64,000 nucleotides of DNA from Malacoraja senta (Eukaryota), in the NCBI GenBank assembly GCA_038087875.1, contig CM075994.1, positions 9,052,001 through 9,116,000 on the forward strand. Direction: 5' to 3'. The position numbers and the translations under genes are program-made. A model generated the notes under the pieces. The model worked only from the letters and a program-made list of their open reading frames with translations, made no database searches and was not told where the DNA came from. Shown here in pieces: positions 11,522-47,857 of this stretch (positions are counted from its first letter, which is position 1; each line of letters opens with the position of its first letter).

Positions 11522-12890
11522 GTAAGTTTCCGTTATATTAACTTTGTCTTTAATGTTCTAAAAAACATTCTGAACACCGGCCACCACACGCCTCAACAAC
11601 AAAGCTTTGTCAGTTCAGATTTAGGCACATAAATTCATTATATATGTAGGAACCAGGGGGCACAGTTTAAGAATAAGGGGTAAGCCATTTGGGACTGAGA
11701 TGAGGAAAACCCGTAGAGTTGTGAATCTGTGGAATTCTCTGCCCGAGAAGGCAGTTGAGGCCAATTCTCTGGATGCTTTCAAGAGAGAGTTAGATAGAGC
11801 TCTTAAAGATAGCGGAGTCAAGGGATATTGGAAGAAGGCAGGAACGGGGTACTGATTGTGGATGGACAGCCATGATCACAGTGAATGGCCGTGCTGGCTC
11901 GAAGGACCGAATGTCTATTGTCTATTGCCCACACCGGCCAACACGTCCCAGCGACATTAGTCCCACCTGCGTGCGCTTGGTCCATATCACTCGAAACCTG
12001 TCCTATCCATGTACCTGTCCTATCCATGTACCTGCTTCTTACACGATGGGATAGTCCCAGCCTCCACGACCTCCTCTGGCAGCTTGCTCCATACACCGAC
12101 CATTTTTGCCATCGAAGAACAATCAAATTCCCTCTTAATTCACATGCCCGCTACGCTCACTCCGACTCCTCCAATTATCAGGGGTAATTTACAGCTGTTC
12201 ATTACCTATCAGGACGCACGTCTCTGGGATGAGAGAGGAAGCAGTAACGCCCAGGGGAAACGCAGGCAATAACATGGAGAACGTGCAAACTCCACACCGG
12301 TAATCAGCATTGAGACCAGGCTACTGGCCCTCAGAGGCAGTAGCTACTTCGGCTATTCCCTCAAGAAACCAAGGTGGAGATAAAGGGAACAGCAAATGCA
12401 GGGTTACAAACAAAAAGACGCAAAATGCTGGAGTAACAGCGGGCCCGGCAGTATGTCTGGAGAACATGGATAGGTCACATTGCGGGATGCTGAAGAAGGG
12501 TGCCGACCTGAAACGTCGCCTATCCATGGGGGTGGTAGATTGCAACCTTCACGTGGTCCGCCCTGTTTCGACGAATGCAATCAACCCGGCGTGCACAATC
12601 AAATAAGATCAAATAGAACAAGTTGTCCTACAACTTTAGGCAATGCACGACATATGCAAGAAGAAGAAGCCTATCCATGTTCTCCAGAGATGCTGCCTGA
12701 CCCGTTGACTTACTCCAGCACTTTGTATACTATGCCAGATTCCCACATCTGTTGTTCCTTTTCAGGCAACTGAAGTCTACGAATTGGTTTACGTTTTGAA
12801 TGGTAGTGGGAACATTTCTGTGTATAAGAATGGAAGGAAACAGAAATGAACTGGGAAGTAATTTGTGAACTTGATGTTTTATTCCTACAG

Positions 12891-13063
12891 AACAGAGCCT
12901 TCTAGAAAGCCCTGCGTGGAGATTACGTTGGCAGCTGCTGATAATGGGAGTGAAACTTGCAACGTTCATTGTGATCAACGTTATAATAGTCTTCATCATC
13001 CGCTCATGGGAGTCTTGTGGATTTGCCAGTCGTAGAAAAGAAGCCAAACAGGCTGGTCAAACG
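12891..13063 (+). CDS. Gene 1 stalk/TM exon with intramembrane lysine (activating type)
   Basis: Acceptor ttttattcctacAG; in phase with V-B; QSLLESPAWRLRWQLLIMGVKLATFIVINVIIVFIIRSWESCGFASRRKEAKQAGQT; donor ACG/GTAAGA. No ATG, so absent from the ORF track. Confidence 0.85.
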
Positions 13064-25763: not shown

Positions 25764-26401
25764 NNNNNNNNNNNNNNNNNNNNNNNNNNNNNNNNNNNNN
25801 NNNNNNNNNNNNNNNNNNNNNNNNNNNNNNNNNNNNNNNNNNNNNNNNNNNNNNNNNNNNNNNNNNNNNNNNNNNNNNNNNNNNNNNNNNNNNNNNNNNN
25901 NNNNNNNNNNNNNNNNNNNNNNNNNNNNNNNNNNNNNNNNNNNNNNNNNNNNNNNNNNNNNNNNNNNNNNNNNNNNNNNNNNNNNNNNNNNNNNNNNNNN
26001 NNNNNNNNNNNNNNNNNNNNNNNNNNNNNNNNNNNNNNNNNNNNNNNNNNNNNNNNNNNNNNNNNNNNNNNNNNNNNNNNNNNNNNNNNNNNNNNNNNNN
26101 NNNNNNNNNNNNNNCACACATACGCACGCACACACGTGCACACACACGTACACACACACGTACACTCACANNNNNNNNNNNNNNNNNNNNNNNNNNNNNN
26201 NNNNNNNNNNNNNNNNNNNNNNNNNNNNNNNNNNNNNNNNNNNNNNNNNNNNNNNNNNNNNNNNNNNNNNNNNNNNNNNNNNNNNNNNNNNNNNNNNNNN
26301 NNNNNNNNNNNNNNNNNNNNNNNNNNNNNNNNNNNNNNNNNNNNNNNNNNNNNNNNNNNNNNNNGGATGGGCCGAAACTATAAGATGATTTCTGGTTTCA
26401 G

Positions 26402-26725
26402 GTGCTGTTGGATCCGATGAATCGATCATACAATCACCGTCGCAGATCACAGTTACTGAAGGCGGGACTGTGCGGATGAATTGTACATTTGTTAACAAGA
26501 CAATTGGGGCCATTAGTTGGTACAAAGACGTGGAATCTCGTACCGTTACCAACACGAGCGGCGACTATTATGGTCGCGTTCTGACAAGCAGTTCACTGGG
26601 AATTCTAAAACAATCCATCGAAATCACTGACCTCAAAATGAACGAGACAGGAAAGTATTACTGCCGAGTGACAGTTTTCACAAGGGAAATATATAATGGC
26701 CACGGCACAGAAGTCACAGTCACAC
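26402..26725 (+). CDS. Gene 2 Ig V-domain exon (V-C), intact; alternative ends at 26761 and 26797
   Basis: GAVGSDESIIQSPSQITVTEGGTVRMNCTFVNKTIGAISWYKD..ETGKYYCRVTVFTREIYNGHGTEVTVT; phase 1-1; three C/GTAAGT donors 36 nt apart. Confidence 0.92.
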
Positions 26726-27159
26726 GTAAGTTTGCGTACAGCACAGATGTCGCAGTCACACGTAAGTTTGCGTACAGCACAGATGTCACGGTCACACGTA
26801 AGTTTGCGTTATCTTAACTTTATCTTTACTGTTCTTAAAAAACATTCTTAATCCGACTCCACTTGCCTTTGTGTGTCGGGTGGAACTGCAGATAGACACA
26901 AAAAACTGGAGTAACTCAGCGGGACAGGCAGCATCTCTGTAGAGAAGGAATGGGTGACGTTTCGGGTCGCGACCCTTCTTGAGGCTGGTTAGGGATAAGG
27001 GAAACGAGAGATATAGGCGATGATGTAGAGATATAATAAATGAAAGATATGCAAAAAAAAGTAACAATGATAAAGGAAACAGCCCATTGTTAGCTGTTTG
27101 TTGGGTGAAACCGAGAAGCTGGTGCGACTTGGGTGGGGGAGGGGTAGAGAGAGAGGGAA

Positions 27160-27620
27160 TGCCGGGATTACTTGAAGTGAGAGAAATCAATATTCATACC
27201 ATTGTCTGTAAACTGCCCAAGCGAAATATGAGATGCTGTTCCTCCAATTTGCGTTTAGCCTCACTCTGACAATGGATGAGACCTTGGACAGAAAGGTCTG
27301 TGTGGGAATGGGAAGGAGAATTAAAGTGTTTAGCAACCGGGAGATCAGGTTGGTTCAGGCGGGCTGAGCGAAGGTGTTCAGCGAAACCATCGCCCAGTCT
27401 GCGTTTGGTCTCGCTGATGTTTTAGAGTCCACATCTGGCACAACTGATACAGTAGATGAGGTTGGAGGAGGTGCAAGTGAACTTCTGCCTCACCTGAAAG
27501 GACTGTCGGGGTACCTGGACAGAGTCGAGGGAGGAGGTGTAAAGACAGGTGTTGCATCTTCTGCGGTTGCAGGGGAAGGTACCTGGGGAGGGGGTGGTTT
27601 GGATGGGAAGGGATGAGTTG
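27160..27620 (-). mobile_element. Penelope-like element relic (GIY-YIG endonuclease region)
   Basis: FTCTSSNLIYCISC..CGL motif. Similar relics at 29640-29930, 52550-52840, 55330-55790, 18230-18420, 59290-59480. Confidence 0.75.
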
Positions 27621-28670
27621 ACCAGGGAGTTGCAGAGGGAAGCAGAAAGGGGCGGCAATGGGAAAATGTGAGGAACTCCAGATGCTGGTTTACACGGAAG
27701 ATAGCTGGAGCAACTCAGCGGGACAGGCAGCATCTCTGGGAATGGGTGCCGGTTCGGGTGGAGACCCCTTCATCATCTTGATGATCGTCTGCTTTGATCT
27801 GTCGTTTTCACCTCACATGCTCTTTGTACCCTTGCATATCTCTAGTCTCCCTCTCCCCTGACTCAGTCTGAAGAAGCTTTTTGTGTCTATCTCCACTTGC
27901 CTTTGAATGGACACAAAATGATGGAGTAACTTTGCGGGTCAGGCAGCATCTCTGGAGAGAAGGAACGGGAGACGAATCAGGGGATATGGGGAGAAGGCAG
28001 GAACGGGGTACTGATTTGGGTTGGTCAGCCATGATCACAGTGAATGGCGGTGCTGGTTCGAAGGGCTGAATGGCCTACTCCTGCACCTATTGTCTATTGT
28101 CTATTGTCTATTGTCTATGGTACAAAGAGCATGTTAGGTGTGAAAACGACAGATCAAAGCAGACGCTGTCCAGGACGATAATGTTGGCTGAGGGGAAGGT
28201 GACAAGGGGGCATGCTATCAGTAAAATTAATCAAGGGGGACAGTGAAACGTGGGAGAACTAGGGTGGGGAGCGACGGAGGGAGCGGGGATGTAAGAGATA
28301 CTTGGAATTAGAGAAGTCAATATTCATACCGCTGGGGTGTAACACTCCAGCGCCGTACAGGTGTGTAGTTTAATTGGCTTGGTATAAATGTAATTATCCC
28401 TGATGTGTGTTGATGTGTGTAGGATAGTGTCAGTGTGCGGGGTTCGCTGGTCGGTACGGATTCGGTCGGCCGAAGGGACTGTTTCCGCGCTGCATCTCTA
28501 AACTAAAGCTGAACTAAAAAAAAACCCCACTCTAATGCCTTCTCTCCACAACACCCGACACCCGTACTGATCACGAATCTATCAATCCACTCCTTAAAGA
28601 TATATAGATTTACTTGGCCTGCGCAGCCACCTGTTGCTGTGTATTTTACTGTACTTTTATTTCTCAACAG

Positions 28671-28808
28671 AGGCTGCTGCGGGCGGCGAGGGATCGTCTT
28701 TTCAAATAAATAATATCTTTCTGCTTGTATTTCCACTCTTGGGCGTTGTGATGCTCGGGATGGTACTGATTCTGATCATTTACCTGCGACGCCGCGGTCG
28801 ATCTCCAG
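28671..28808 (+). CDS. Gene 2 stalk/TM exon, uncharged TM
   Basis: Acceptor ttttatttctcaacAG; 138 nt, phase 1-1; AAAGGEGSSFQINNIFLLVFPLLGVVMLGMVLILIIYLRRRGRSP; donor G/GTAATA. Confidence 0.9.
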
Positions 28809-31800
28809 GTAATAACATCAAGTCAAGTCAAATCAAGTCAAGTTTATTTGTCGCATACAAGATGTGCAGTGAAATGAAAGTGGTGGATTGTGCAAAACAA
28901 CTGAACAACAGAACAGAATAGAACAGAACCAGTATTTACATTTTAGGGAAAGTTAAAAAAAAAAAGACATATCACAATAGTAAATTAATGAATTAGTCCC
29001 TGGTGAGGTCAGAGTTTACAGTCCTGATGGCCTGTGGGAAGAAACTCCGTCTCATCCTCTCTGTTTTCACAGCATGACAGCGGAGGCGTTTGCCTGACCG
29101 TAGCAGCTGGAACAGTCCGTTGCTGGGGTGGTAGGGGTCCCCCATAATGTTGCTGGCTCTGGATCTGCACCTCCTGGTGTATAGGACCTGCAGGGGTGCG
29201 AGTGTAGTTCCCAGAACGCACTACTCTCTGCAGAGCCTTCATGTCCTGGGCAGAGCTGTTCCCAAACCAGATTGAGATGTTACCGGACAAGGTGCTTTCT
29301 ACAGCCCCAGAGTAGAAGCACCAAAGGATCCTCAGAGAGACTCTGAATTTCCTCAGCTGCCTGGGGTGTTAAAGGCGCTGCTTGCCTTACTCACCAGTGC
29401 GGTATGGAAGCAATTTCCTCTTTCCTTGCTACGCGAACGCAAGCTCTGGAACCCAGAAGGAAATCCTCGGACGATTAGGTCTCCTGGGATCTAAAGGTCC
29501 TGTCCGTGTGTTAGTTTAGTTTATTTCAGAGATACAGCGCGGGAGTAGGCCCTTCGGCCCAGCGACTCCGCACCGACCATTGATCCCCGCACATCAACAC
29601 TATCCGACGCACACGAGGGACAATTTTATAGTTCTACACAACCCATTAACCTGCACATCCTCCAACCTCATCTACTGCATCTGCTGCTCCAAGTGTCAAA
29701 TTCTCCACATCGGCGAGACCAAGCGCCGGCTCGGCGTTCACTTCGCTGAACACCTCCCTCTGTCAGTGTTAACAAATCTGATCGCCCGGTTGCTCAGCAC
29801 TTCACATCCCCCTCCCATTCCCAATCTGACCTTTCTGTCCTGGGCCTCCTCCATTGCCAGAGTGAGGCTCAGCGCAAATCGGAGGAACAGCACCACATAT
29901 ATCGCTTGGGTAGTTTACACCCCCAGCGGTATGAACTCCCTCCTTCCCCTCCCGTTCCCAGTTCTCCCACGTCCGACTGTCTCCACCTACTTCCTTTCTT
30001 TTTCCCGCCCCCCTTCCCCCGACATCAGTCTGAAGAAGGGTCTCTACCCGGAACGTCGGCTATTCCTTCTCACCATAGATGCTGCCTCACCAGATGAGTT
30101 TCTCCAGCATTTTTTGTCTACCTTCGATTGTTCCAGCATCTGCAGTTCTTTCTTAGACAACTCACCTACACATCTGTAGCTCTTTGAAGCGCGGGAGGAA
30201 ACCGAAGATGTCGGGGAAAACCCACGCGGGTCTCGGGGAACACGACAAACTCCGTCCAGACAGTACCCGTACTCGGGATCGAACCCGTGTCTCAGGCGCT
30301 CCAGAGATGCTGCCTGACACTCTGTTATTCCAGCATTTTGTGCTTTCTTCAAAAAAACTGAACGTATTGCACAGATTTGGAATTTATTTCCACTAATCAG
30401 AAGCGAGAAAGATTCTTGTTTATGCAGATAAAATACTAGCAGATCTTCGCCTACTTATTGGTCCCTAAAAGTACTCGAGGAAGCTTGTAACAAGGGAATA
30501 CGAAGGGGAACAAGTTCCGAATGTGGAGGGAGAGAAGAAACATGACGCAGGGGATTATTAAATTTGCCAGCAACACAAGTTTATTATCTCAATGTGTGGG
30601 AAGGAACTGTAGAAAGTGATTAAGACACAAAAATGCAGGAGTAACTCAGCGGGACAGGCAGCATCTTCGGAGAGAAGGAACGGGTGACGTTTCGGGTCGA
30701 GACCCTTCATCAGACTGATGTCAGGGGAGAGGGAGATACAGAGATAAGAAAATGTAAGGAGTGAGAACGAGAAGGAGAAGCAGTACCCATTCCCTTGATC
30801 TCCAACCCCTTTTATGTATCGTTCTCACACCTTACACGTCCTTATCCCCTGTATCTCCCTCAAGTCAACTCAAGTCAAGTCAAGTCAAGAGAATGTATGT
30901 CATGTATCCCAGATAGAACAATGAAATTCTTGCTTGGGGCCAGGGTGTGAGTGGTCCTTGCTTATGCTGCTGGTCTTGCCGAGGCAGCGTGAGGTATAAA
31001 TGGAGTCAATAGGAAGGAGGTTGGTTCGTGTGATGGTCTGGGCTGCGTACCCAATTCAATGCAATTTCTTGCGGTCTTGGATGGAGCTGTTCCCAAACCA
31101 AGCTGTGATGCTTCCCGATAAATGCTTTCTATGTGCATCTGTAGAAGTTGGTGGCAGTTGTAGGGGACACGCCAAACTTCCTAAGCCTTCTAAGGAAGTA
31201 GAGGCGTTGGTGTGCCAACGAAATATTTAGAGACATGCGCCCAAACGTGAGATTCATCATCGTTGAAAACATTAGCGACGCAGTGGTGCTGGTTTCCAAC
31301 GGGAACGGTGACGGAAGCACCACAGATCTCTGTCCTCCAGTTCTTGCGGACTTCCGCCGCTGGAAGTATAGGATTTTGGTGTGTGTGTGTGTGTTGTGTG
31401 TGTGTGTGTGTGTGTGCTTTATCATCATTCCTTACAATGCCATGTACGACAGTGATCGCAACTTCTACTAAAGTGTGGTGGCCGTTGGCTCGCTAGAAGC
31501 TCATCCGCCCTTTGACTGGTCTTGTCTTTGGTTCTGCTGGGGGTCCACAGCCCCCCTACTCACTGGCAAAACAGGTGGGGGAGACGTTTAGTCGCCGACT
31601 ACCCGATCATGGAGGAGGTAGCACGGGATTACATGGTACCCGTGGCGGGAACTCCCGTCAGATGGGACAGGCGTAAATGGAGCATCTTGGTCGACATGGA
31701 AGTTGAGGGGGGGGGGGTGTTTCGGTGCTGATGACTCTATATTCAAAAAACTATTGTACAGAGAAAATATAATTTTGTAAGAGCAAGGTTATGTTAATGA

Positions 31801-31931
31801 GTAAAGTTATGTTAATGAACGAACTATTATTCTCATAGGCCACATCCTCTATTGAATGAAATCGAATTTTATTATTGGTAGTTATTTGTTTCGGTGCTTG
31901 AAATAAGTAACTTGTTCACAATATATTACAG

Positions 31932-31962
31932 ATAAAGGAACCGGAACAGAACTGGGGATAAG
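31932..31962 (+). CDS. Gene 2 cytoplasmic micro-exon (31 nt; 1 nt shorter than the gene 3 paralog, frameshifting the ITIM exon)
   Basis: tatattacAG/ATAAAGGAACCGGAACAGAACTGGGGATAAG/GTATGT. Confidence 0.6.
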
Positions 31963-34215
31963 GTATGTAGTCAATTATACTTTAAATGTTTCCTCTGACT
32001 TGATCAGTGGTTATTTGCCATTTTTGTTTCTTTGTGAATTAAATTGACATTAGACAATAGACAATAGGTGCAGGAGTAGGCCATTCGGCATTTCAAGCAG
32101 CACCGCCTTTCAATTTGTTCATGGCTGATCATCCCCAATCAGTGCCCCGTTCATGCCTCCTCTCCATATCCCCTGACGCCGCTATCTTTAAGAGCCTATC
32201 TATCTCTCTCTTGAAAGCATCCAGAGAATCGGCCTCCACCGCCCTCAGAGGCAGAGAATTCCACAGACTCACAACTCTCTGTGTGAATAAGTGTTTCCTC
32301 CCCTCCGTTCTAAATGGCTTATCCCTTATTCTTCAACTGTGACGCCTGGTTCTGGACTCCCCCAACATCGGACGTTTCCTGCCCTCTACCATGTACAAAC
32401 CCTTAACAATCCTTTATGTTCAATAAGATAACCTCTCATCCTTCTAAACTACAGAGTGTACAAGCCCAGCCGCTCCATTTCTCAGCATATGACAGTCCCG
32501 CCATCCCGGGAATTAACCTCGTGAAACCTACACCCGAACTCCCTCAATAGCCATCCAGACCGGTCCTTGTTCATCAGTGACTAAAAGTTAGCATGCACAT
32601 ACAGCAGGCAGTGAAGAAAGCGAATGGCATGTTTGCCTTCATAATAAGAGGAGTTGAGTATAGGAGCAAAGAGGTCCTTCTGCAGTTGTACTGGGCCCTA
32701 GTGAGATCACACCTGGAGTATTGTGTCCAGTTTTGGTCCCCTAATTTGAGGAAGGACATTCTTGCTATTGAGGGAGTGCAGCGTAGGTTTACAAGGTTAA
32801 TTCCCGGGATGGCGAGGCTGTCATATGCTGAGAGAATGGAGCTACTGGGCTTGTATACTCTGGAGTTTAGAAGGATGAGAGGGTATCTTATTGAACATAA
32901 AGGATTATTAAGGTTTGTACATGGTAGAGGCAGGAAACATGTTCCCGATGTTGGGGGAACACATCTCCATTAACCCCCCCCCCAAAAAAAACCTTCTCAC
33001 AGTACAGCTATGCCCCCTAGTGTTCGACATTTCAACCCAATTAATGTTGAATTATTGTTATTCACGGTGACAAAACTAGAATGAGAAGTTCCCTTCAGGC
33101 AATTGCTTTGGGATAAATATTACATATTCATTTAAAGAGATTTTCAAGCGAATTGCAAGAAAATGGATCATTTATCGCAAGTATTTGTTCAGCCACGGTA
33201 TAATCTGCTCAGCATTCTATGGTGTATCTATCATTGGAATTAACCGGTAACGGTGGATATATTAATCTCACAACTTAATGGCGAACCTAAAACAGTTAAT
33301 TTGCTTTCATCCCGCGGCATGCTTCGCAGCGGAGTTGTTATAAATGTTAGGTTGCTGAACCGCTTCATGAAAGAGGCTCATTGACCAGAAACTAACACAA
33401 TGCTCGATACCTCAAATCAATAGACAATAGACAATAGGTGCAGGAGTAGGCCATTCGAGCCAGCACCGCCATTCAATGTGATCATGGCTGATCATCCACA
33501 ATCAGTAACCCGTTCCTGCCTTCTCCCCATATCCCCTGAATCCGTTGTGAACTTTTGAAGAGGGATAAGTTACCGGACAAAATCCAATCGTATGTAGGTT
33601 TCAAATGGAGTCATGGAGTGATACAGTTTGGAAACACGTCCTTCGGCCCAACCTGCCCACTCCGGCCATCAATATCCCAGCTACACTAGTCCCAACTGCC
33701 TGCGCTTGGTCCATATCCCTCCAAACCTGTCCTATCCATGTTCCTGTCTAACTCTTTCTTAAATGTTGTGGCAGTCCCATCCTCAACTACCTCCTCTGGC
33801 AACTCGTTCCATACACCCACCGCGGTTTGTGTGGAAAAGGTTACTCCTTAGATTCCTATTCAATCTTTTCCCATTCACCTTGAACAACCGTCCTCTGGTC
33901 TTCGATTCCTCTACTCTGGGGAAGAGACTCTGTGCATCTACCCGATCTATTCCTCTCGTGATTTTGTACACCTCTATAAGATCACCCCTCATCTTCCTGC
34001 GCTCCAAGGAATAGAGACCCAGCCTACTCAACCTCTCCCTGCAGCTCACACCCTCTACTCCTGGCAAAATCCTCGTAAATCTTGCAACAAATAATCCAGA
34101 AACTAACACAATGCTTCAAATCACACAGGGTTTATGGAATTAGGAAGAGGTGCTGGACAATTTCCAAACTTGTTTAGGTTTCAAATGTTGTAACAAATAC
34201 CCTGTTACATTCCAG

Positions 34216-34515
34216 GAAAATGACACATCGGAAAATATAATCTATGCTGACCTGAATATCAAAAAGTCGAACAGAAATCACCGTTCGGGTCACGATGCCA
34301 GAGGGAATGGGGCTAGGGTCAAAGACCCCGGCGGGGCCGGACCTCTGTCAGCAGCAGGTGGAAGGGAAGACCCGGTCGTGTACTCCGCCTTGAAACCCCG
34401 CGCTCCGATTAACACTCCAGCGTCGAGCAAGCAGAAGAAGCATCACAGAAGACAGGAACAGCAGGTTGTGTACGCAACGGTAAATGCTCAGCGTCCACCA
34501 GTTCTCTATCACTGA
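34216..34515 (+). CDS. Gene 2 terminal exon encoding three ITIMs (IIYADL, VVYSAL, VVYATV)
   Basis: Acceptor gttacattccAG, phase 0, 100 codons to TGA; motifs fit (S/I/V/L)xYxx(I/V/L). Confidence 0.88.
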   Translation, partial: ENDTSENIIYADLNIKKSNRNHRSGHDARGNGARVKDPGGAGPLSAAGGREDPVVYSALKPRAPINTPASSKQKKHHRRQEQQVVYATVNAQRPPVLYH

Positions 34516-35285
34516 ACATTGGGAATGAGAGGACTGTACTAGGCGGCGACGCTCTCTTAGTTTAGTTCATTAACGCGGAAACAGGCCCCGCGGCCCCCCG
34601 AATCCGCTCCGACCAGCGCTTCTAGCACTAACACACATTAGGGACAATTTACCATTTTTGCCGAAGCCAAATTAAACCACAAACCCGAATGTCTATGGAG
34701 TGTGGGAGGAAACCGGAGCACCCGGGGAAAACCCACGCGGGTCACGCGGAGAACCTAAAAACTCCGTGCAGACAGCACCCGTAGTCAGGATCGAACCCAG
34801 TAGCTTGTTCCATGCACCCAGCCAATTAAATGTAATATTTCCAAGTTTGCGGATGACACAAAGCTGGGTGGCAGTGTGAGCTGCGAGGATGATGCTATGA
34901 GGCTGAAGGGGGACTTGGATAGTTTGGGTGAGTGGGCAGATGCATGGCAGGTGCAGTAAAATGTCGGTTATAAATGCAGCATAAAGGCAGTATAAAGGGC
35001 CGAATGGCCTACTCCTGCACCTATATTCTATATTTCTATGTTTATAATTAATTCCAACAGCTTTGGAGCAGTCACGAATAGTTATTTCTGGAAGACTTTT
35101 ATTTTGATAAGACACGAGCGCCATTGCATTCAATGAAATTTACTAACAAATAACCATTCATGTAAATATCGATGGAAATATTACCTATGCTATTTGTGTG
35201 AGGGATTTTGAAGTATTATGACATAAGTATGGTTGTTAAACATCAACAATTCAGTGTTACCTGTGGTTTAAACATTCGATACTTC

Positions 35286-35291
35286 AATAAA
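35286..35291 (+). terminator. Candidate polyadenylation signal of gene 2 (paralogous signal of gene 3 at 46718-46723, minus strand)
   Basis: AATAAA retained at the equivalent position in both 3' flanks; a third partial copy near 41120 reads AATAAC. Confidence 0.35.
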
Positions 35292-38200
35292 GTTTTGGAA
35301 TGGTATCACACCGAGTATTTAGCACCGAGTTCTGATTTCCTTTCGCCTTTACGCCAATTGACTTCAACGAATACACGTTCTCCCCGTGACCACGTAAGTT
35401 TTCTCCGAGATCTTCCTCCCACACTCCACAGATGTACAGGTATTGGCTGGTTGTATGTGTAAATTGTGCCGGGTATGTGAGATCATATTGAATGTCGGTG
35501 CTGGCTCGAAGGCCCGAATGGCCTACCCCTGCCCCTATTTTTCTACGTGTCTATGTTTTTCTATGTGTAGGATAGTGTTAATGTGTGCGGGGATCGCTGG
35601 TCGGCGTAGGTAGGGCCAAAGGGCTTCTTTCCGCGCTGTATCTCTAAACTAAACTAAACTAAACTAAACACAAGACGTGATTAATTTTCTACTTAGTCAG
35701 CGTTGAAGATTAAACTAAGATTTCGTTTAGAGATACAGCGCGGAAACAGGCCCTTCGGCCACCGGGTCCGCGCCAACCAGCGATCCCGCACACTAACACC
35801 ATACTACACCCACTAGGGACAATTTTTATTTTTATTTTTTTTATTTTTGCATTTACCAAGCCAATTTAACCGACAAACCTGCACGTCTTTGGAGTGTGGG
35901 AGGAAACCGATTTTCACGGTGGAAATCCACGCAGGACGGGTAGAACGTACAAACTCTGTACAGACAGCACCCGCTAATGGCTGGCGTTTCAAAGCGATTG
36001 TTGCCTTTGCCCTTCTTGGTCGTTGAGACCTTGGCTGGGGGCAAGGAGGTGTGGGAGGAAGTTGCCTTGGCAAACAAGAGAGTTTGGTTTAGAGATACAG
36101 CGCAGAAACAGGCCCTTCGGCCCATCGACCAGCGATCCCCGCACATTAGCACTATCATAGAAACTATGTGCAGGAGGAGGCCATTTGGCCCTTCGAGCCC
36201 GCACCGTCACACATTGGTGTGTATCCTACACACCCTAGGGACCATTTTACATGTACCAAGCCAATTAATCTGCAAACCTGTTCGTCCTTGGACTGCGGGA
36301 GGAAACCGAAGATCTCGGAGCAAAACCCACGCAGGTCACGGGGAGAACGTGCAAACTCCGAACAGACAGCACCCGTAGTCGGGATCGAACCCGGGTCTCT
36401 GGCGCTGTGAGGCTGCAGCTCTACCGCTACCTCACCGATAAGCAAAATCTGTGGTTCGAACCACATTTGACGCTATACAACGCTCCAGGTTTAGCGTTTA
36501 TACAACAGGGCAGGTTTAGAGAGATACGGGACATAAACGCAGGACTCGTGTAGATGGGGCATCTTGGTCGACATGGGCAAGAAATAATACAGCCAGAAGG
36601 GTAAATGCAGAGTAACCCCGTGTGAAATTGTGCAGAGCCATAGATAAAGGCTCTTGGAGAAAGGAATGGGGGGGGGGGGGGTTGTAGACCTAGAAGCACT
36701 GATATTAAGAACAAACCTTTTCATTAATCTCATCTGAAATGGAGGTAAGAGACAACATTTCAGGTTGAGACCTTACCTCAGACTGGAGAAGGGTCCAGAC
36801 TTGAGATGACATCATCCATTTCCCTCTACAGATGCTGCCTGACCCGGTGAGTTCCTCCAGCACTTCGCATTTTCCTCGTGCTTCCAGGACCTTGACGATT
36901 TTCAATCATGTTTCAATGGTACTTAATTGTCATAGTGATTTTTTTTACATCATTCGTAAAGCAAAGCGCATTAAAGCACAGGAACGGGCCTTCGGCCCAC
37001 AATGTTTGTGCGGAACATGTTGCCAAGTTCAGCTGATCTCATATGCCCATACATGATCAATTTCCTACTGATTCCTGCACTCGCTTGAGTCCTTTCGGGT
37101 CAGATCCCTTCTTCAGACATTGAAGGCACTTCCACCATTGATTTGTCCCCAACCGGCACGTCTTCATTGTTATCCGTCACCAGGAGAGGGCGCTCCGACC
37201 CAGAATTATGGAGGCATACAGCACGGAAACAGGCCCTTCGGCCCAACTTGCCCATGTCGACCAAGATACCCCATCTACACTAGTCCCATCCACCTGCGAT
37301 AATATCCAGTATCTCTCTAAACGTCTAAATGTCTCTTAAATGTTCTTACAGCACATAAAGCGTTGTATAGCGTCAAATGTGGTTCGCTATCGAACCACAG
37401 ATTTTGCTTACCGGTGAGGTAGTGGTTGAGCTGTTGCCTCACAGCGCCAGAGACCCGGGTGCGATCCCGACTACAGGTGCTGTCTGTACGGAGTTTGCAC
37501 GTTTTCTCCGTGACCTTCGTGGGTTTTCTCCGAGATCTTTGGTTTCCTCCCACACTCCAAGGACGTACATGTTTGCAGATTAATTGGCTTGGTACGTGTA
37601 AAATTGTCCCTAGAGTGTGTGGGATACACACCAATGTGTGACGGTGCGGGCTCGAAGGGCCAAATGGCCTCTTCCTGCACCTATTTTCTATGATAGTGCT
37701 AATGTGCGGGGATCGCTGGTCGATGGGCCGAAGGGCCTGTTTCTGCGCTGTATCTCTAAACTAAACTCTCATGTTTGCCAAGGCAACTTCCTCCCTCACC
37801 TCCTCGCCCCCAGCTCCGGCCTGAACGACCAAGAAGGGCAAAGGCAACAATCGCCTTGAAACGCCAGCCATTTGCAATTCACGTCTCCTACCATAGATGA
37901 CACAACACTGACCCTTCATCTTCACCAGATCTACATCTATCAACGGTCTGCCCAACGACACGGCGGGAACACCTTCACTGGAAGGACTGTAATGGTTCAA
38001 GAAAGCGAATATTTTAGTTTAATTTAGTTTAGAGATAGTGCCGGGAAACAGGCCTTTCGGTCCACCGTGGCCGCGCCGACCAGCGATCCCCGCACATTAA
38101 CACGATCCTACACCCACCAGGGACAATTTTTACATTTGCCACAAGCCAATTAACCTACAAACCTGTACGTCGTTGGAGCGTGGGAGGAAACCGAAGATCT

Positions 38201-38919
38201 TGGAGAAACCCCACGCAGGTCATGGGGAGAACATACAAACTCGGTACAGACAGCACCCGTAGTCGGGATCGAACCCGGGTTTCCGGCGCTGCATTCGCTG
38301 TAAGGCAGCAACTCTACCCCCGCGCCACCGTGACCGGCCGAGTCGTTACTACTTTCGCAAAAAATATTAATTATATCAATAATAAATTACCAGAGTAGGC
38401 GAATCGAGGACAAGAGGACATAGGTTTATGGTGAAGGGGAAGGGGAAGGGGGAAATATTTAATAGGAATCTGAGGGGTAACTTTTTCACACATAGGGTGG
38501 TGGGTGTATAGAACAAGCTTCCAGAGGAGGTAGTTGAGGCTGGGACTATCCCAACGTTTCAGAGACAGTTAGACAGGTACATGGATAGGACAGGTTTGGA
38601 GACATATGGGGCAAACGCGGGCAGGTGGGACTAGTGTAGCTGGGACACGTTGGCCGGTGTGGGCAAGTTGTGCCGAAGGGCCTGTTTCCACGCTGTATCA
38701 CTATGACACGATGGCTCTAATAAATCCTGACCTGCCAGAGCTGACCTGCTCCCAAGAACTGAAGAAATAATAATAACGCCCTAAGCACTAAGTTATCATA
38801 CGTGGAACAGCAGGTCAAAGTTCAGAAGCGTCATCCACCTGACGCATTATTGATGTGAATTTCTGCGCCCGACGGAAAACACATTTTATTCCCGCCGCAA
38901 GTCTTTAATTTCTCCATTA

Positions 38920-40380
38920 GAAACATAGAAACATAGAAAATAGGTGCAGGATAAGGCCATTCGGCCCTTCGAGCCTGCACCGCCATTCAATATGATCATG
39001 GCTGATCATCCAACTAAGTATCCTGTACCGGCCTTCTCTCCATACCCCCTGATCCCTTTAGCCACAAGGGCCACATCTAACTCCCTCTTAAATATAGCCA
39101 ATTAACTGGCCTCAACTACCTTCTGTGGCTGAGAATTCCACAGATTCACCACTCTCTGTGTGAAAAATGATTTTCTCATCTTGGTCCTAAAAGACTTCCC
39201 CCTTATCCTTAAGCTGTGACCCATGGTTCTGGACTTCCCCAACATCGGGAACAATCTTCCTGCATCTAGCCTGTCCAACCCCTTAAGAATCTTGTAAGTT
39301 TCTATAAGGTCCCCCCTCAATCGTCCAAATTCTAGCGAGTACAAGCCGAGTCTATCCAGTCGTTCTTCATATGAAAGTCCTGCCATCCGAGGAATCATTG
39401 TGGTGAACCTTCTCTGTCTTCCCTCTATGGCAAGAATGTCTTTCCTCAGATTTGGTGACCAAAACTGTACGCAATACTCCAGGTGTGGCCTCATCAAGAC
39501 CCTGTACAACTGCAGTAGAACCTCCCTGCACTTATACTCAAATCCTTTTGCTATGAATGCTAACATACCATTCGCTTTCTTCACTGCCTGCTGCAACTGC
39601 ATGCCTACCATGACACCCAGATCTCGTTGCATCTCCCCTTTTCCTAATCGGCCACCATTCAGATAATAGTCTACTTTCTGTTTTTGCCACCAAAGTGGAT
39701 AACCTCACATTTATCCACATTATACTGCATCTGCCATGCATTTGCCCACTCACCCAACCTATCCAAGTGACCTTGCAGCCTCCTAGCATCCTCCTCACAG
39801 CGAAAACTGCCCCCCAGCTTCGTGTCATCCGCAAACTTGGAGATGTTGCATTCAATTCCCTCATCCAGATCTTTAATACCCCACTAGTCACTGCCTGCCA
39901 TTCTGAAAAGGACCCGTTTACTCCTACACTTTGCTTCCTGTCTGCCAGCCAGTTCTCTATCCACATCAATACTGAACCCCCAATACCGTGTGCTTTAAGT
40001 TTACATACTAATCTCTTATGCGGGACCTTGTCGAAAGCCTTCTGAAAGTCCAGGTATAACATATCCACTGGTTCTCCCTTATCCACTCTACTAGTTACAT
40101 CCTCGAAAAATTCTACAAGATTCGTCAGACATGATTTACCTTTCATAAATCCATGCTGACTTTGTCCAATGATTTCACCACTTTCCAAATGTGCAGCTAT
40201 CCCATCTTTAATAACTGACTCTAGCATTTTCCCAACTACCGATGTTAGACTAACTGGTCTGTAATTTCCCGTTTTCTCTCTCCCTCCCGTTTTAAAAAGT
40301 GGGGTTTCATTAGCTACCCTCCAATGCTCAGGAACTATTCCAAAATCTAAAGAGTTCTGAAAAATTATCACTAATGCATC
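38920..40380 (-). mobile_element. CR1/HER1-like LINE fragment
   Basis: ORFs 39538-40371 and 39102-39632 with RT motifs; duplicate of part of 43560-45870. Confidence 0.93.
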
Positions 40381-42570: not shown

Positions 42571-43559
42571 GTTACATCTATCAACGCTTTGCCCAACGAC
42601 ACGGCGGGAACACCTTCACTGGAAGGACTGTATTGGTTCAAGAAAGCGAGTCTTTTAGTTTAATTTAGTTTAGAGATAGAGCGCGGAAACAGGCCCTTCG
42701 GTCCACCGTGTCCGCGCCGACCAGCGATCCCCGCACATTAACACGATCCTACACCCACCAGGGACAATTTTTACATTTACCACAAGCCAATTAACCTACA
42801 AACCTGTACGTCTTTGGAGAGTGGGAGGAAACCGAAGATCTCGGAGAAAACCCACGCAGGTCATGGGAAGAACATACAAACTCGGTACAGACAGCACCCG
42901 TAGTCGGGATCGAACCCGGGTCTCCGGCGCTGCATTCGCTGTAAGGGAGCAACTCTACCCCCGCGCCACCGTGACCGGCCGAGTCGTTACTACTTTCGCA
43001 AAAAATATTAATTATATCAATAATAAATTGCCAGAGTAGGTGAATCGAGGACAAGAGGACATAGGTTTATGGTGAAGGGGAAGGTGAAGGGGGAAATATT
43101 TAATAGGAATCTGAGGGGTAACTTTTTCACACAGAGGGTGGCGGGTGTATAGAACAAGCTCCCAGAGAAGGTAGTTGAGGCTGGGACTATCCCAACGTTT
43201 CAGAGACAGTTAGACAGGTACATGGATAGGACAGGTTTGGAGAGATATAGGGCAAACGCGGATAGGTGGGACTGGTGTAGCTGGGACACGTTGGCCGGTG
43301 TGGGCAAGTTGGGCCGAAGGGCCTGTTTCCACGCTGTATCACTCTATGACACGATGGCTCTAATAAATCCTGACCTGCCAGAGCTGCCCCGATCCAAAGA
43401 ACTGAAGAAATAACAATAACCCCTTAAACACTAAATAATCATACGTGGAACAGCAGGTCAAAGTTCAGAAGCGTCATCCACCTGACGCATTATTGATGTG
43501 AATTTCTGCGCCCGAGGGAATACACATTTTATTCCCGCCGCTAGTATTTAACTTCTCCA

Positions 43560-45870
43560 TTAGAAACATAGAAACATAGAAACATAGAAAATAGGTGCAG
43601 GAGTAGGCCATTCGGCCCTTCGAGCCTGCACCGCCATTCAATATGATCATGGCTGATCATCCAATTAAGTATCCTGTACCTGCCTTCTCTCCATACCCCC
43701 TGATCCCTTTAGCCACAAGGGCCACATCTAACTCCCTCTTAACTATAGCCAATGAACTGGCCTCAACTACTTTATGTGGCTGAGAATTCCACAGATTCAC
43801 CAATCTCTGTGTGAAAAATGATTTTCTCATCTCGGTCCTAAAAGACTTCCCCCTTATCCTTAAACAGTGACCCCCTTGTTCAGGACTTCCCCAACATCGG
43901 GAACAATCTTCCTGCATCTAGCCTGTCCAACCCCTTAAGAATCTGATAAGTTTCTATAAGATCCCCCCTCTATCTTCTAAATTCTAGCGAGTACAAGCCG
44001 AGTCTATCCAGTCTTTCTTCATGTGAAAGTCCTGACATCCCAGGAATCAGTCTGGTGAACTTTACTGTACTCCCTCTATGGCAAGAATGTATTTCCTCAG
44101 ATTTGGTGACCAAAACTGTACGCAATACTCCAGGTGTGGCCTCATCAAGACCCTGTACAACTGCAGTAGAACCTCCCTGCACTTATACTCAAATCCTTTT
44201 GCTATGAATGCTAACATACCATTCGCTTTCTTCACTGCCTGCTGCAATTGCATGCCTACTTTCAATGACTGATGTACCATGACACCCAGATGTCGTTGCA
44301 TGTCCCCTTTTCCTAATCGGCCACCATTCAGATAATAGTCTACTTTCCTGTTTTTGCCACCAAAGTGGATAACCTCACATTTATCCACAATATACTGCAT
44401 CTGCCATGCATTTGCCCACTCACCCAACCTATCCAAGTGACCTTGCAGCCTCCTAGCATCCTCCTCACAGCTAACACTGCCCCCCCAGCTTCGTGTCATC
44501 CGCAAACGTGGAGATGTTGCATTCAATTCCCTCATCCAGATCATTAATATATATTGTAAATAGCTGGGGTCCCAGCACTGAGCCTTGCGGTACCCCACTA
44601 GTCACTGCCTGCCATTCTGAAAAGGACCCGTTTACTCCTACTCTTTGCTTCCTGTTTGCCAGCCAGTTCTCTATCCACATCAATACTGAACCCCTAATAC
44701 CCTGTGCTTTAAGTTTGCATACTAATCTCTTATGTGGGACCTTGTCGAAAGCCTTCTGAAAGTCCAGATATAACACATCCAGTGGGTCTCCCTTATCTCT
44801 AGCATTTTCCCCACTACCGATGTTAGACTAACAGGCCTGTAATTCCCCGTTTTCTCTCTCCCTCCCTTTTTAAAAAGTGAGGTTACATTAGCTACCCTCC
44901 AATCCTCAGGAACTACTCCAGAATCTAAAGAGTTCTGAAAAATTATCACTAATGCATCCACTATTTCTGGGGCTACTTCCTTAAGTACTCTGGGATGCAG
45001 CCTGTCTGGCCCTGGGGATTTATCGGCCTTTAATCCATTCAATTTACCTAACACCACATCACGGCTAACCTGGGTTTCACTCAGTTCCTCCATCTCATTT
45101 GACCCCCAGACCCCTGCTATTTCCGGCAGATTATTTATGTCTTCATAAGTGAAGACAGAACCAAAGTAGTTATTCAATTGGTCTGTTGTATCCTTGTTCC
45201 CCATGATCAATTCACCAGTTTCTCACTGCAAGGGACCTACATTTGTTTTAACTAATCTTTTTCTCGTCACATATCTATAAAAACTTTTGCGGTCAGTTTT
45301 TATGTTCCCTGCCAGGTTTTTTTCATAATCTATTTTCACTTTCCTAATTAAGCCCTTTGTCCTCCTCTGCTGGACTCAGAATTTCCTCTGGTAGGCTGCT
45401 TTTTCGGGCTAATTTGTATGCTTCATCTTTTGTTTTAATACTATCCCTGATTTCCCTTGTTATCCACGGATACGCTACCTTCCCTGATTTATTCTTTTGC
45501 CAAACTGGGATGAACAATTGTTGTAGTTCATCCATGCAGTCTTTAAATGCCTTCCATTGCATATCCACCGTCAACCATTTAAGAATCACTTGCCAGTCTA
45601 TCTTGGCCAATTCACGTCTCATTCCCTCAAATTTACCCTTCTTTAAGTTCAGAACCCTTGTTTCTGAATTAACAATGTCACTCTCCATCCTAATGAAGAA
45701 CTCAACCATATTATGGTCACTCTTGCCCAAGGGGCCACGCACAACAAGACTGCTAACCAACCCTTCCTCATTACTCAATACCCAGTCTAGAATAGCCTGT
45801 TCTCTCGTTGGTCCCTCTACATGTTGGTTTAGAAAACTATCCCGCATATATTCCAAGAGTGTATCTTGTT
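43560..45870 (-). mobile_element. CR1/HER1-like LINE, degenerate with internal deletion
   Basis: ORFs 45344-45874 (APE), 44722-45210, 44471-44776, 44062-44598. Confidence 0.93.
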
Positions 45871-47482: not shown

Positions 47483-47857
47483 TCAGTGATGGAGAAGTGG
47501 TGGACGCTGAGCATTCACGGTTGCGTACACCACCTGTTGTTCCTTTCTTCTGGGATTCTTCTTCTGCTTGCTCGATGCTGGAGTGTCCATCGGAGCGGGA
47601 TGTCTCAAGGCGCAGTATACGACCGGGTCTTCCCTTCTACCTGCCGCCGATGCTGGAGTGTCTGTTGGAGCGGGATGTCGCAAGGCGGAGTATACGACCG
47701 GGTCTTCCCTTCCACCTGCCGCCGACAGAGGTCCAGCCTCGCCGGGGTCTTTGACCCTAGCCCCATTCTCTCTGGCACCGTGATCCGAACGGTGATTCCT
47801 GTTCGACTTTTTCATATTCAGGTCAGCATAGATTATATTTTTCGATGTGTCATTTTC
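47483..47857 (-). CDS. Gene 3 terminal exon encoding four ITIMs (IIYADL, VVYSAL, VVYCAL, VVYATV)
   Basis: Acceptor tttacattccAG; 125 codons; 75 nt longer than the gene 2 exon because of an internal duplication. Confidence 0.88.
   Translation of the reverse strand, partial: ENDTSKNIIYADLNMKKSNRNHRSDHGARENGARVKDPGEAGPLSAAGGREDPVVYSALRHPAPTDTPASAAGRREDPVVYCALRHPAPMDTPASSKQKKNPRRKEQQVVYATVNAQRPPLLHH

Follow-up and report, generated by a model that had tools for sequence, protein, structure and literature searches.

A minisatellite spanning an exon–intron boundary repeats the splice donor in a putative NKp30-like receptor family of skates

Introduction

Can a short tandem repeat that copies a splice donor together with coding sequence set the length of an immune-receptor stalk? 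The question is raised by a 64,000-nt stretch of the genome of the skate Malacoraja senta (contig CM075994.1, positions 9,052,001 to 9,116,000; hereafter "the window", to which all coordinates refer), which carries four homologous immunoglobulin (Ig) V exons, V-A, V-B, V-C and V-D. The V-C exon ends in a 36-bp repeat with a donor in every unit, and the original prediction made for this locus was that copy number and splicing together tune the height of the receptor ectodomain.

Receptor necks and stalks of variable length are well known. The 23-aa neck repeats of CLEC4M/L-SIGN, the 13-aa repeats of GP1BA and the hinge exons of IgG3 are tandem coding repeats that alter the distance between binding domain and membrane, and they vary between alleles. 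To our knowledge, these repeats lie wholly within an exon or consist of whole exons, they contain no splice donors, and splicing choice plays no part in setting their length. The skate unit, in contrast, carries a donor of its own. Here, we describe the V-C array, compare it with its paralogues and with the corresponding genes of a second skate, and weigh the ways in which the repeated donors might be used.

Results

V-C ends in three in-register units with identical donors

The V-C V exon follows an acceptor AG at 26400-26401, begins at 26402 and runs on the forward strand to a first donor (26402..26725; Pfam V-set, E 3.2e-12). It encodes a germline-joined V-J Ig domain with the J motif GHGTEVTVT; the leader exon is not visible because of runs of N upstream. 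A stalk and transmembrane exon with a phase-1 acceptor (28671..28808, +) contributes ~15 stalk residues and the membrane segment. By homology to a protein of the skate Rhinoraja longicauda, described below, we placed a 31-nt cytoplasmic mini-exon at 31932..31962 (+) and a last exon at 34216..34515 (+) with the tyrosine motifs IIYADL, VVYSAL and VVYATV. The frame of these inhibitory-type motifs is still open in the last exon. However, the mini-exon is 32 nt long in V-D (50498-50529 region) and in Rhinoraja, and the V-C copy, being one base short, shifts the frame as assembled, leading to a stop at 34238 after ~25 cytoplasmic residues and before the tyrosine motifs. A weak GT four bases past the mini-exon would restore the frame; it overlaps a far better donor. 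The loss of the tail would be due to an assembly error, to a lesion of recent date or to V-C being a tail-less variant. Given the uncharged membrane segment and the ITIM-type tail exon, we regard V-C as an inhibitory-type paralogue rather than NKp30 proper.

At the end of the V exon, Tandem Repeats Finder (TRF) reported a 36-bp repeat at 26705-26809 (2.9 copies, 94% matches, score 189). Read in register, the array (36 bp x 3.0; 26702..26809, +) consists of exactly three units, at 26702-26737, 26738-26773 and 26774-26809, with unrelated intron sequence beyond; the original prediction had the correct start but extended the array to 26817, past its end at 26809. Each unit comprises the last 24 nt of the J-like V exon end and the first 12 nt of the intron, and the first of them spans the exon–intron junction, the exon ending at 26725. 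Since the duplicated segment includes both the end of the exon and the start of the intron, the phase-1 donor is repeated with it. As predicted, the donors (CAC/GTAAGTTT, that is CAC/GTAAGT, where the slash marks the boundary) are identical and in phase 1 at 26726, 26762 and 26798. The 11-mer CACGTAAGTTT is the same in 3/3 units, with equal U1 duplex energy. The 19-mer GTCACACGTAAGTTTGCGT, which crosses the junction, has three exact occurrences; allowing ≤3 mismatches, it is found at eight sites in the window, all of them V-exon ends, where 0.01 would be expected by chance.

From each of the three donors the frame runs on into the membrane exon at 28671 and across the transmembrane segment, and the read-through is free of stops (...GHGTEVTVT RKFAYSTDVAVT RKFAYSTDVTVT RKFA). 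Each additional unit contributes 12 aa in frame, which bears out another part of the original prediction. Counting the stalk from the end of J to the membrane segment, V-C could make stalks of ~15 residues from donor 1 (26726..26731, +), 27 from donor 2 (26762..26767, +), which adds RKFAYSTDVAVT, and 39 from donor 3 (26798..26803, +), which further adds RKFAYSTDVTVT. Units 2 and 3 differ at 2/36 positions. The units can be read without a stop in two of the three frames, and the handful of positions at which they differ all change the amino acid; purifying selection on the added peptide is thus not apparent. Separately, we considered differential masking of the donors by RNA secondary structure and dropped it, as folding of the V-C array gave no structure beyond that of shuffled sequences (z 0.10).

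One way to read these features is that V-C carries a neutral intronic minisatellite: only 26726 would be used, units 2 and 3 would be silent pseudo-sites, and the in-frame unit length would be coincidental. In favour of this reading, the prior chance of a unit being in frame and stop-free is ~1 in 5.

The added units would form a flexible stalk below an NKp30-like domain

Among PDB entries, the top single-domain non-antibody matches to V-C were human NCR3 chains (6yjp, 3pv6, 3noi and 9fww; E 2.7e-19 to 2.8e-18), and GHGTEVTVT aligns with the J motif (GxGTxVxV) of ray and shark relatives that NCBI names "NCR3-like". We consider the V-C V domain to be NKp30-like by sequence; the window has no flanking marker genes by which to link it to NCR3. 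V-C and human NKp30 (NCR3) both have a single V-J type Ig domain, and the 15-aa stalk of NKp30 compares with a basal stalk of ~15 aa in V-C. They differ in that NKp30 has neither an ITIM tail nor a repeat of J end and donor, whereas V-C is an apparent inhibitory-type paralogue in a large skate family. A charged residue for adaptor pairing, a mark of activating NKp30 proper, is absent from the V-C membrane segment; the V-B membrane segment has a lysine.

In an AlphaFold model built from a shallow, 16-sequence alignment, residues 6-112 form the Ig domain, with the first J as its G strand (103-108), while residues 113-136 have pLDDT below 50 and no secondary structure. The model fits a role for the additional units as a flexible stalk outside the Ig fold. 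Could an extra J-like unit take the place of the G strand or exchange with it? We rejected this idea, since in the same model, with the same shallow alignment behind it, the first J belongs to the fold and the units are disordered.

The stalk is the basis of a second reading, in which the V-C donors are used alternatively, copy number varies between alleles, and selection acts on an ectodomain height of 0, +12 or +24 aa. That all three V-C junctions are in frame agrees with it. So does the finding that human NKp30 depends on its 15-aa stalk for oligomerisation and gains apparent affinity and signalling from it (PMC7409301). However, that study describes the effect of having a stalk and not graded tuning by its length; the original prediction, which took an effect of stalk length on NKp30 as established, holds for the presence of the stalk only. 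The lack of sequence constraint on the added peptide also argues against a selected tuning device.

Unit number and donor quality differ among paralogues in the window

We read the ends of the other three V exons in the same way, measuring donor strength by U1 duplex energy and consensus matches. In the one assembly used, unit number is one in V-A, two in V-B and three in both V-C and V-D. The single-unit V-A exon (3487..3712, +, of which 3487-3706 precede the donor; 5′ part masked) has the dead donor that was predicted, CAC/ATACGT at 3707, with no GT. V-B (11152..11521, +; 11152-11485 to the first donor) likewise has the predicted pair of a weak donor, GTTCGT at 11486, and a strong one, GTAAGT at 11522, 36 nt apart; its additional unit reads RSFVYGTEVTVT. 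An activating membrane exon with the lysine in its membrane segment lies at 12891..13063 (+), in frame with the phase-1 donors. The U1 duplex energy was -5.7 kcal/mol for every GTAAGT, -0.2 for the first V-B donor and +0.5 for ATACGT. As an observation apart, a 127-bp tandem repeat (2.0 copies, 98% matches) occupies 10505-10758, ~400 bp upstream of the V-B exon.

V-D lies on the reverse strand, with its V exon and three-unit array at 56160..56556 (V exon 56556-56240); TRF found this second 36-bp array, at the end of the V-D exon, at 56160-56258. Its first two donors, at 56239 and 56203, are GTAAGT; the third, at 56167, is a dead ATACGT. The prediction of two strong donors and one dead one was correct for V-D, to which we add an extra T at 56263 (- strand; the J end reads GGCCATCGG, as against GGCCACGG in V-C). 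The extra T shifts the J frame and puts both live donors in phase 2, and V-D is probably a pseudogene as assembled. In its last exon we noted a 75-bp x 2 in-frame tandem duplication (47573-47725, -; 92% matches), which doubles a 25-aa segment with the middle tyrosine motif (VVYSAL + VVYCAL) that V-C has in one copy. The dead ATACGT, which departs from GTAAGT by G1A and A4C, is common to V-A (3707-3712) and the last unit of V-D (56167-56162), and suggests that an activating-type and an inhibitory-type copy share this site by descent or through conversion.

Copy number does vary among paralogues, in keeping with a tuning device. However, both three-unit genes are frameshifted as assembled, once each, and this weakens the argument that selection tunes them. 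To judge from these lesions, V-C and V-D may be decaying. The frameshifts could instead be assembly errors, in which case V-C would encode an intact inhibitory receptor and keep all three donors live. Persistence of the array in a frameshifted V-D is, for its part, what a neutral minisatellite would lead one to expect.

Two-unit genes have a decayed first donor and a perfect second one

Two NCBI models from Rhinoraja longicauda, XP_078271940 and XP_078271942, were the only close proteins that large databases returned. Word-indexed searches of protein databases with the V-C read-through and both Rhinoraja models as queries returned no M. senta protein and nothing transcript-derived. In the genomic sequence of the Rhinoraja activating gene, CAC/GTATGA is followed 33 nt on by CAC/GTAAGT; in the neighbouring inhibitory gene, CAT/GTATCA is followed 27 nt on by CAC/GTAAGT. 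Copy number and donor quality therefore vary between the two skate species as well as between paralogues, the latter as originally predicted. The first Rhinoraja donors have U1 duplex energies of -2.3 and -1.3 kcal/mol, which places decayed donors overall at -2.3 to +0.5 kcal/mol, well clear of the GTAAGT sites. Both Rhinoraja models, which may be ab initio (one of them, P0151, is truncated at its 5′ end), splice at the second donor and so include one extra unit in the coding sequence, giving the products ...GTAVTVT-RMSTAVTVTVT-... and ...GTAVRVT-CISTAVTVT-.... Across V-B, V-C, V-D and the two Rhinoraja genes, unit lengths are 36, 36, 36, 33 and 27 nt, all of them multiples of three and stop-free. 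Decay of the first donor occurred independently at least twice, as GTTCGT in M. senta and as GTAT[G/C]A in Rhinoraja.

Several features together suggest that the extra unit has become ordinary coding sequence: the first donor is decayed, the last is perfect, the frame survives changes of length (36, 33 and 27 nt), and the gene models splice from the final donor. In V-B and both Rhinoraja genes, with their upstream donor decayed and their terminal one still perfect, the extra unit would have become constitutive; it is probably now a fixed, flexible stalk extension of 9–12 aa. The stalk would thereby have grown from ~15 to 24-27 residues, the length that we count in V-B and the Rhinoraja genes; ray relatives have stalks of ~8-17 residues. 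The case for an absorbed unit is suggestive rather than strong. By chance alone, the first donor would be the one lost in two or three lineages with a probability of ~1 in 4 to 8, V-D has lost its last donor and not its first, and the frame-keeping length changes are few and partly explained by slippage at a hexamer repeat (see below).

These genes bear on both other readings. A neutral intronic minisatellite fails for V-B and Rhinoraja, where the first donor is weak or dead, the second is perfect and the Rhinoraja models include the unit. A device for tuning by donor choice is also disfavoured, since the older copies have resolved to one strong donor. The claim that repeat number and splicing tune ectodomain height is accordingly divided: stalk length does differ between genes, the two Rhinoraja models having one extra unit each, but older two-unit genes with a decayed upstream donor point to a single fixed donor.

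A single duplication at the edge of a homogenised V exon

Both M. senta and Rhinoraja longicauda have the duplication, in activating as well as inhibitory paralogues. Its junction is identical in every copy of both skates, intron sequence ending ..GT being followed by the AC[G/A]G of the J end, and a single junction in all copies argues for a single origin. The founding event was one ancestral 36-bp tandem duplication, taking in the last 24 nt of the J end and the first 12 nt of the intron. Unequal exchange or slippage would later have set copy number between one and three, and a GTCACA-GTCACA hexamer repeat within the unit is a plausible seed for slippage. Outside skates, the one electric ray (Narcine) locus that we read has a single TAC/GTAAGT donor and no repeat, and the J repeat was not found at the protein level in predicted stingray and shark relatives; absence beyond skates is a statement about that one locus and those predicted proteins.

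Sequence similarity divides differently on the two sides of the junction. Downstream intron flanks group by gene type (91% identity for V-B and Rhinoraja activating, 92% for V-C and Rhinoraja inhibitory, ~75% between activating and inhibitory), whereas V exons cluster by species (90-95% within, 82-85% between). We interpret this pattern, a usual mark of exchange in paired receptors, as evidence of sequence exchange between paired receptor genes that is confined to the V exon. With V exons grouping by species and introns by type, the array falls at the edge of a tract homogenised between paralogues. By the same comparison, the array would either predate the activating/inhibitory split or have spread by exchange.

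V-C and V-D themselves are the arms of a ~10-kb tail-to-tail inverted duplication (26371-35973 versus 56594-46020; 87-88% identity), which intron divergence would make about as old as the species split. Between the arms there is a direct repeat of ~2 kb with 94% identity (37932-39878 versus 42573-44549), probably a transposable element or a recent segmental copy. Unit 3 of V-C matches unit 2 of V-D at 36/36 positions, and the first J end of V-D resembles unit 2 of V-C. This correspondence suggests a register shift through unequal exchange.

A similar array in a bird receptor

A predicted SIRP-like protein of the barn swallow Hirundo rustica (RMB95766.1) repeats GEWGSGTEVSV[L/Q] ~14 additional times beyond its first J motif, and its gene (QRBI01000184.1, L004 9672-10214) contains a 36-bp x 15.1 array with 97% matches. 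As in the skates, the unit lies at the V exon end and combines the J end (GSGTEVSV[L/Q]) with a phase-1 donor, here G/GTGAGT. The swallow array differs in having many more copies and in lying between the V and C1 domains rather than before the membrane anchor. We conclude that this arrangement arose independently in a different family of V-J receptors. We know of no paper that describes it. That the deposited annotation translates every unit is probably an artefact of prediction and not a sign of a 170-residue hinge. Fifteen translated units would make an implausibly long hinge, a point in favour of units being spliced out as the neutral reading has it.

Donor-repeating minisatellites are a known class, with divided precedents

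The closest precedent for the V-C array is intron 7 (IVS7) of human F7, where the first monomer of a 37-bp VNTR spans the exon 7 boundary and provides five to nine identical donors (PMC1557585, Borensztajn et al. 2006). Both are boundary-spanning minisatellites with an identical donor every 36-37 nt. In several cell types, only the most upstream F7 donor is used, and the next is used only if the first is mutated (PMC1557585); by the summary in the same article, LMNB2 and PDGF likewise use the first donor only. These cases favour silence of V-C units 2 and 3 and weigh against tuning, F7 doing so at near-identical spacing. Takeover by the next donor upon mutation of the first in F7 is also the state that we see in V-B and Rhinoraja. 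F7 differs from the skate genes in several respects, however. Its 37-bp unit is mostly intron (4 nt exon + 33 nt intron), it has five to nine copies, its polymorphism is documented, and splicing at most of its other donors breaks the frame; the skate unit is 36 bp, two thirds coding, in frame and stop-free, in one to three copies. Moreover, GTAAGT is stronger than the F7 donor (UGG/GUGGGU), and strong duplicated sites favour the downstream copy, which makes silence of the later V-C donors less assured.

Other precedents run the opposite way. As reported in PMC1557585 and PMC4526556, human IFI6 (6-16) constitutively uses the authentic donor of exon 2 together with the two nearest repeat donors, so that three mRNAs and protein isoforms are made (Turri et al. 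1995, cited there), and the account in PMC1557585 has CBS using two pseudo-sites besides the authentic donor. IFI6 as so described has repeat units that provide multiple donors, the very mechanism that had been proposed for V-C, and to that extent supports tuning. It differs in having ~26 copies and in encoding an interferon-induced mitochondrial protein rather than an Ig receptor stalk, and donor use in the skate is a prediction. For strong duplicated donors in mammalian tests, the intron-proximal copy is mostly spliced, and proximal use climbs beyond ~30 nt separation to ~100% at 45 nt or more (PMC3413131). By this proximity rule, the 36-nt spacing of V-C falls in the mixed zone where both donors are used, again as tuning would have it. 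We conclude that the skate array is a boundary-spanning minisatellite that repeats a donor, of the type of F7, IFI6 and CBS, a class already described.

Discussion

We favour, with a probability of about 0.6, an explanation in which a boundary-spanning minisatellite arose by one ancestral duplication, its extra unit was absorbed into the coding sequence of two-unit genes, and V-C splices from one dominant donor. All three V-C donors are intact and in frame; we expect the ordinary splicing machinery to make the choice, with a neighbouring donor used to a small extent, and no regulated tuning of length. The V-C and V-D arrays may persist neutrally in decaying genes.

The reading in which the units of V-C are silent throughout is doubtful, if still the better placed of the alternatives: it agrees with F7 and the frameshifted V-D, and it has no answer to the two-unit genes. 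Tuning of ectodomain height by allelic copy number and alternative donors, the central claim of the original prediction, we judge improbable. The differences in stalk length between genes survive; the step from there to a tuning mechanism meets the fixed donors of the two-unit genes and the first-donor rule of F7 with its 37-bp spacing, and with IFI6, CBS and F7 already on record the mechanism would in any case not be new in kind. We rate a shade lower still the broader proposal that minisatellites of J end and donor are a recurrent, evolvable length module of V-J type Ig receptors. On this view, combined use of the repeated donors in V-C-type genes would yield stalks of 15, 27 and 39 residues, unit numbers would vary between individuals, receptor reach would follow from splicing and copy number jointly, and the swallow array would be a second instance.

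The skate array is distinctive in that its unit keeps the frame and is coding over two thirds of its length, in that it lies in an immune-receptor stalk, and in that older copies appear to have been absorbed into the exon. As it stands, we have a neat observation on the evolution of a rapidly changing gene family, and not a new mechanism. With perfect, in-frame GTAAGT donors 36 nt apart, the array is a natural test bed for two rules that would give different outcomes here, "intron-proximal wins" for strong sites and, after F7, "most upstream wins". Should splicing use the repeated donors, V-C would be a natural case of a short repeat lengthening an immune-receptor stalk without breaking the receptor, and paired activating and inhibitory receptors of skates could alter their reach by slippage alone.
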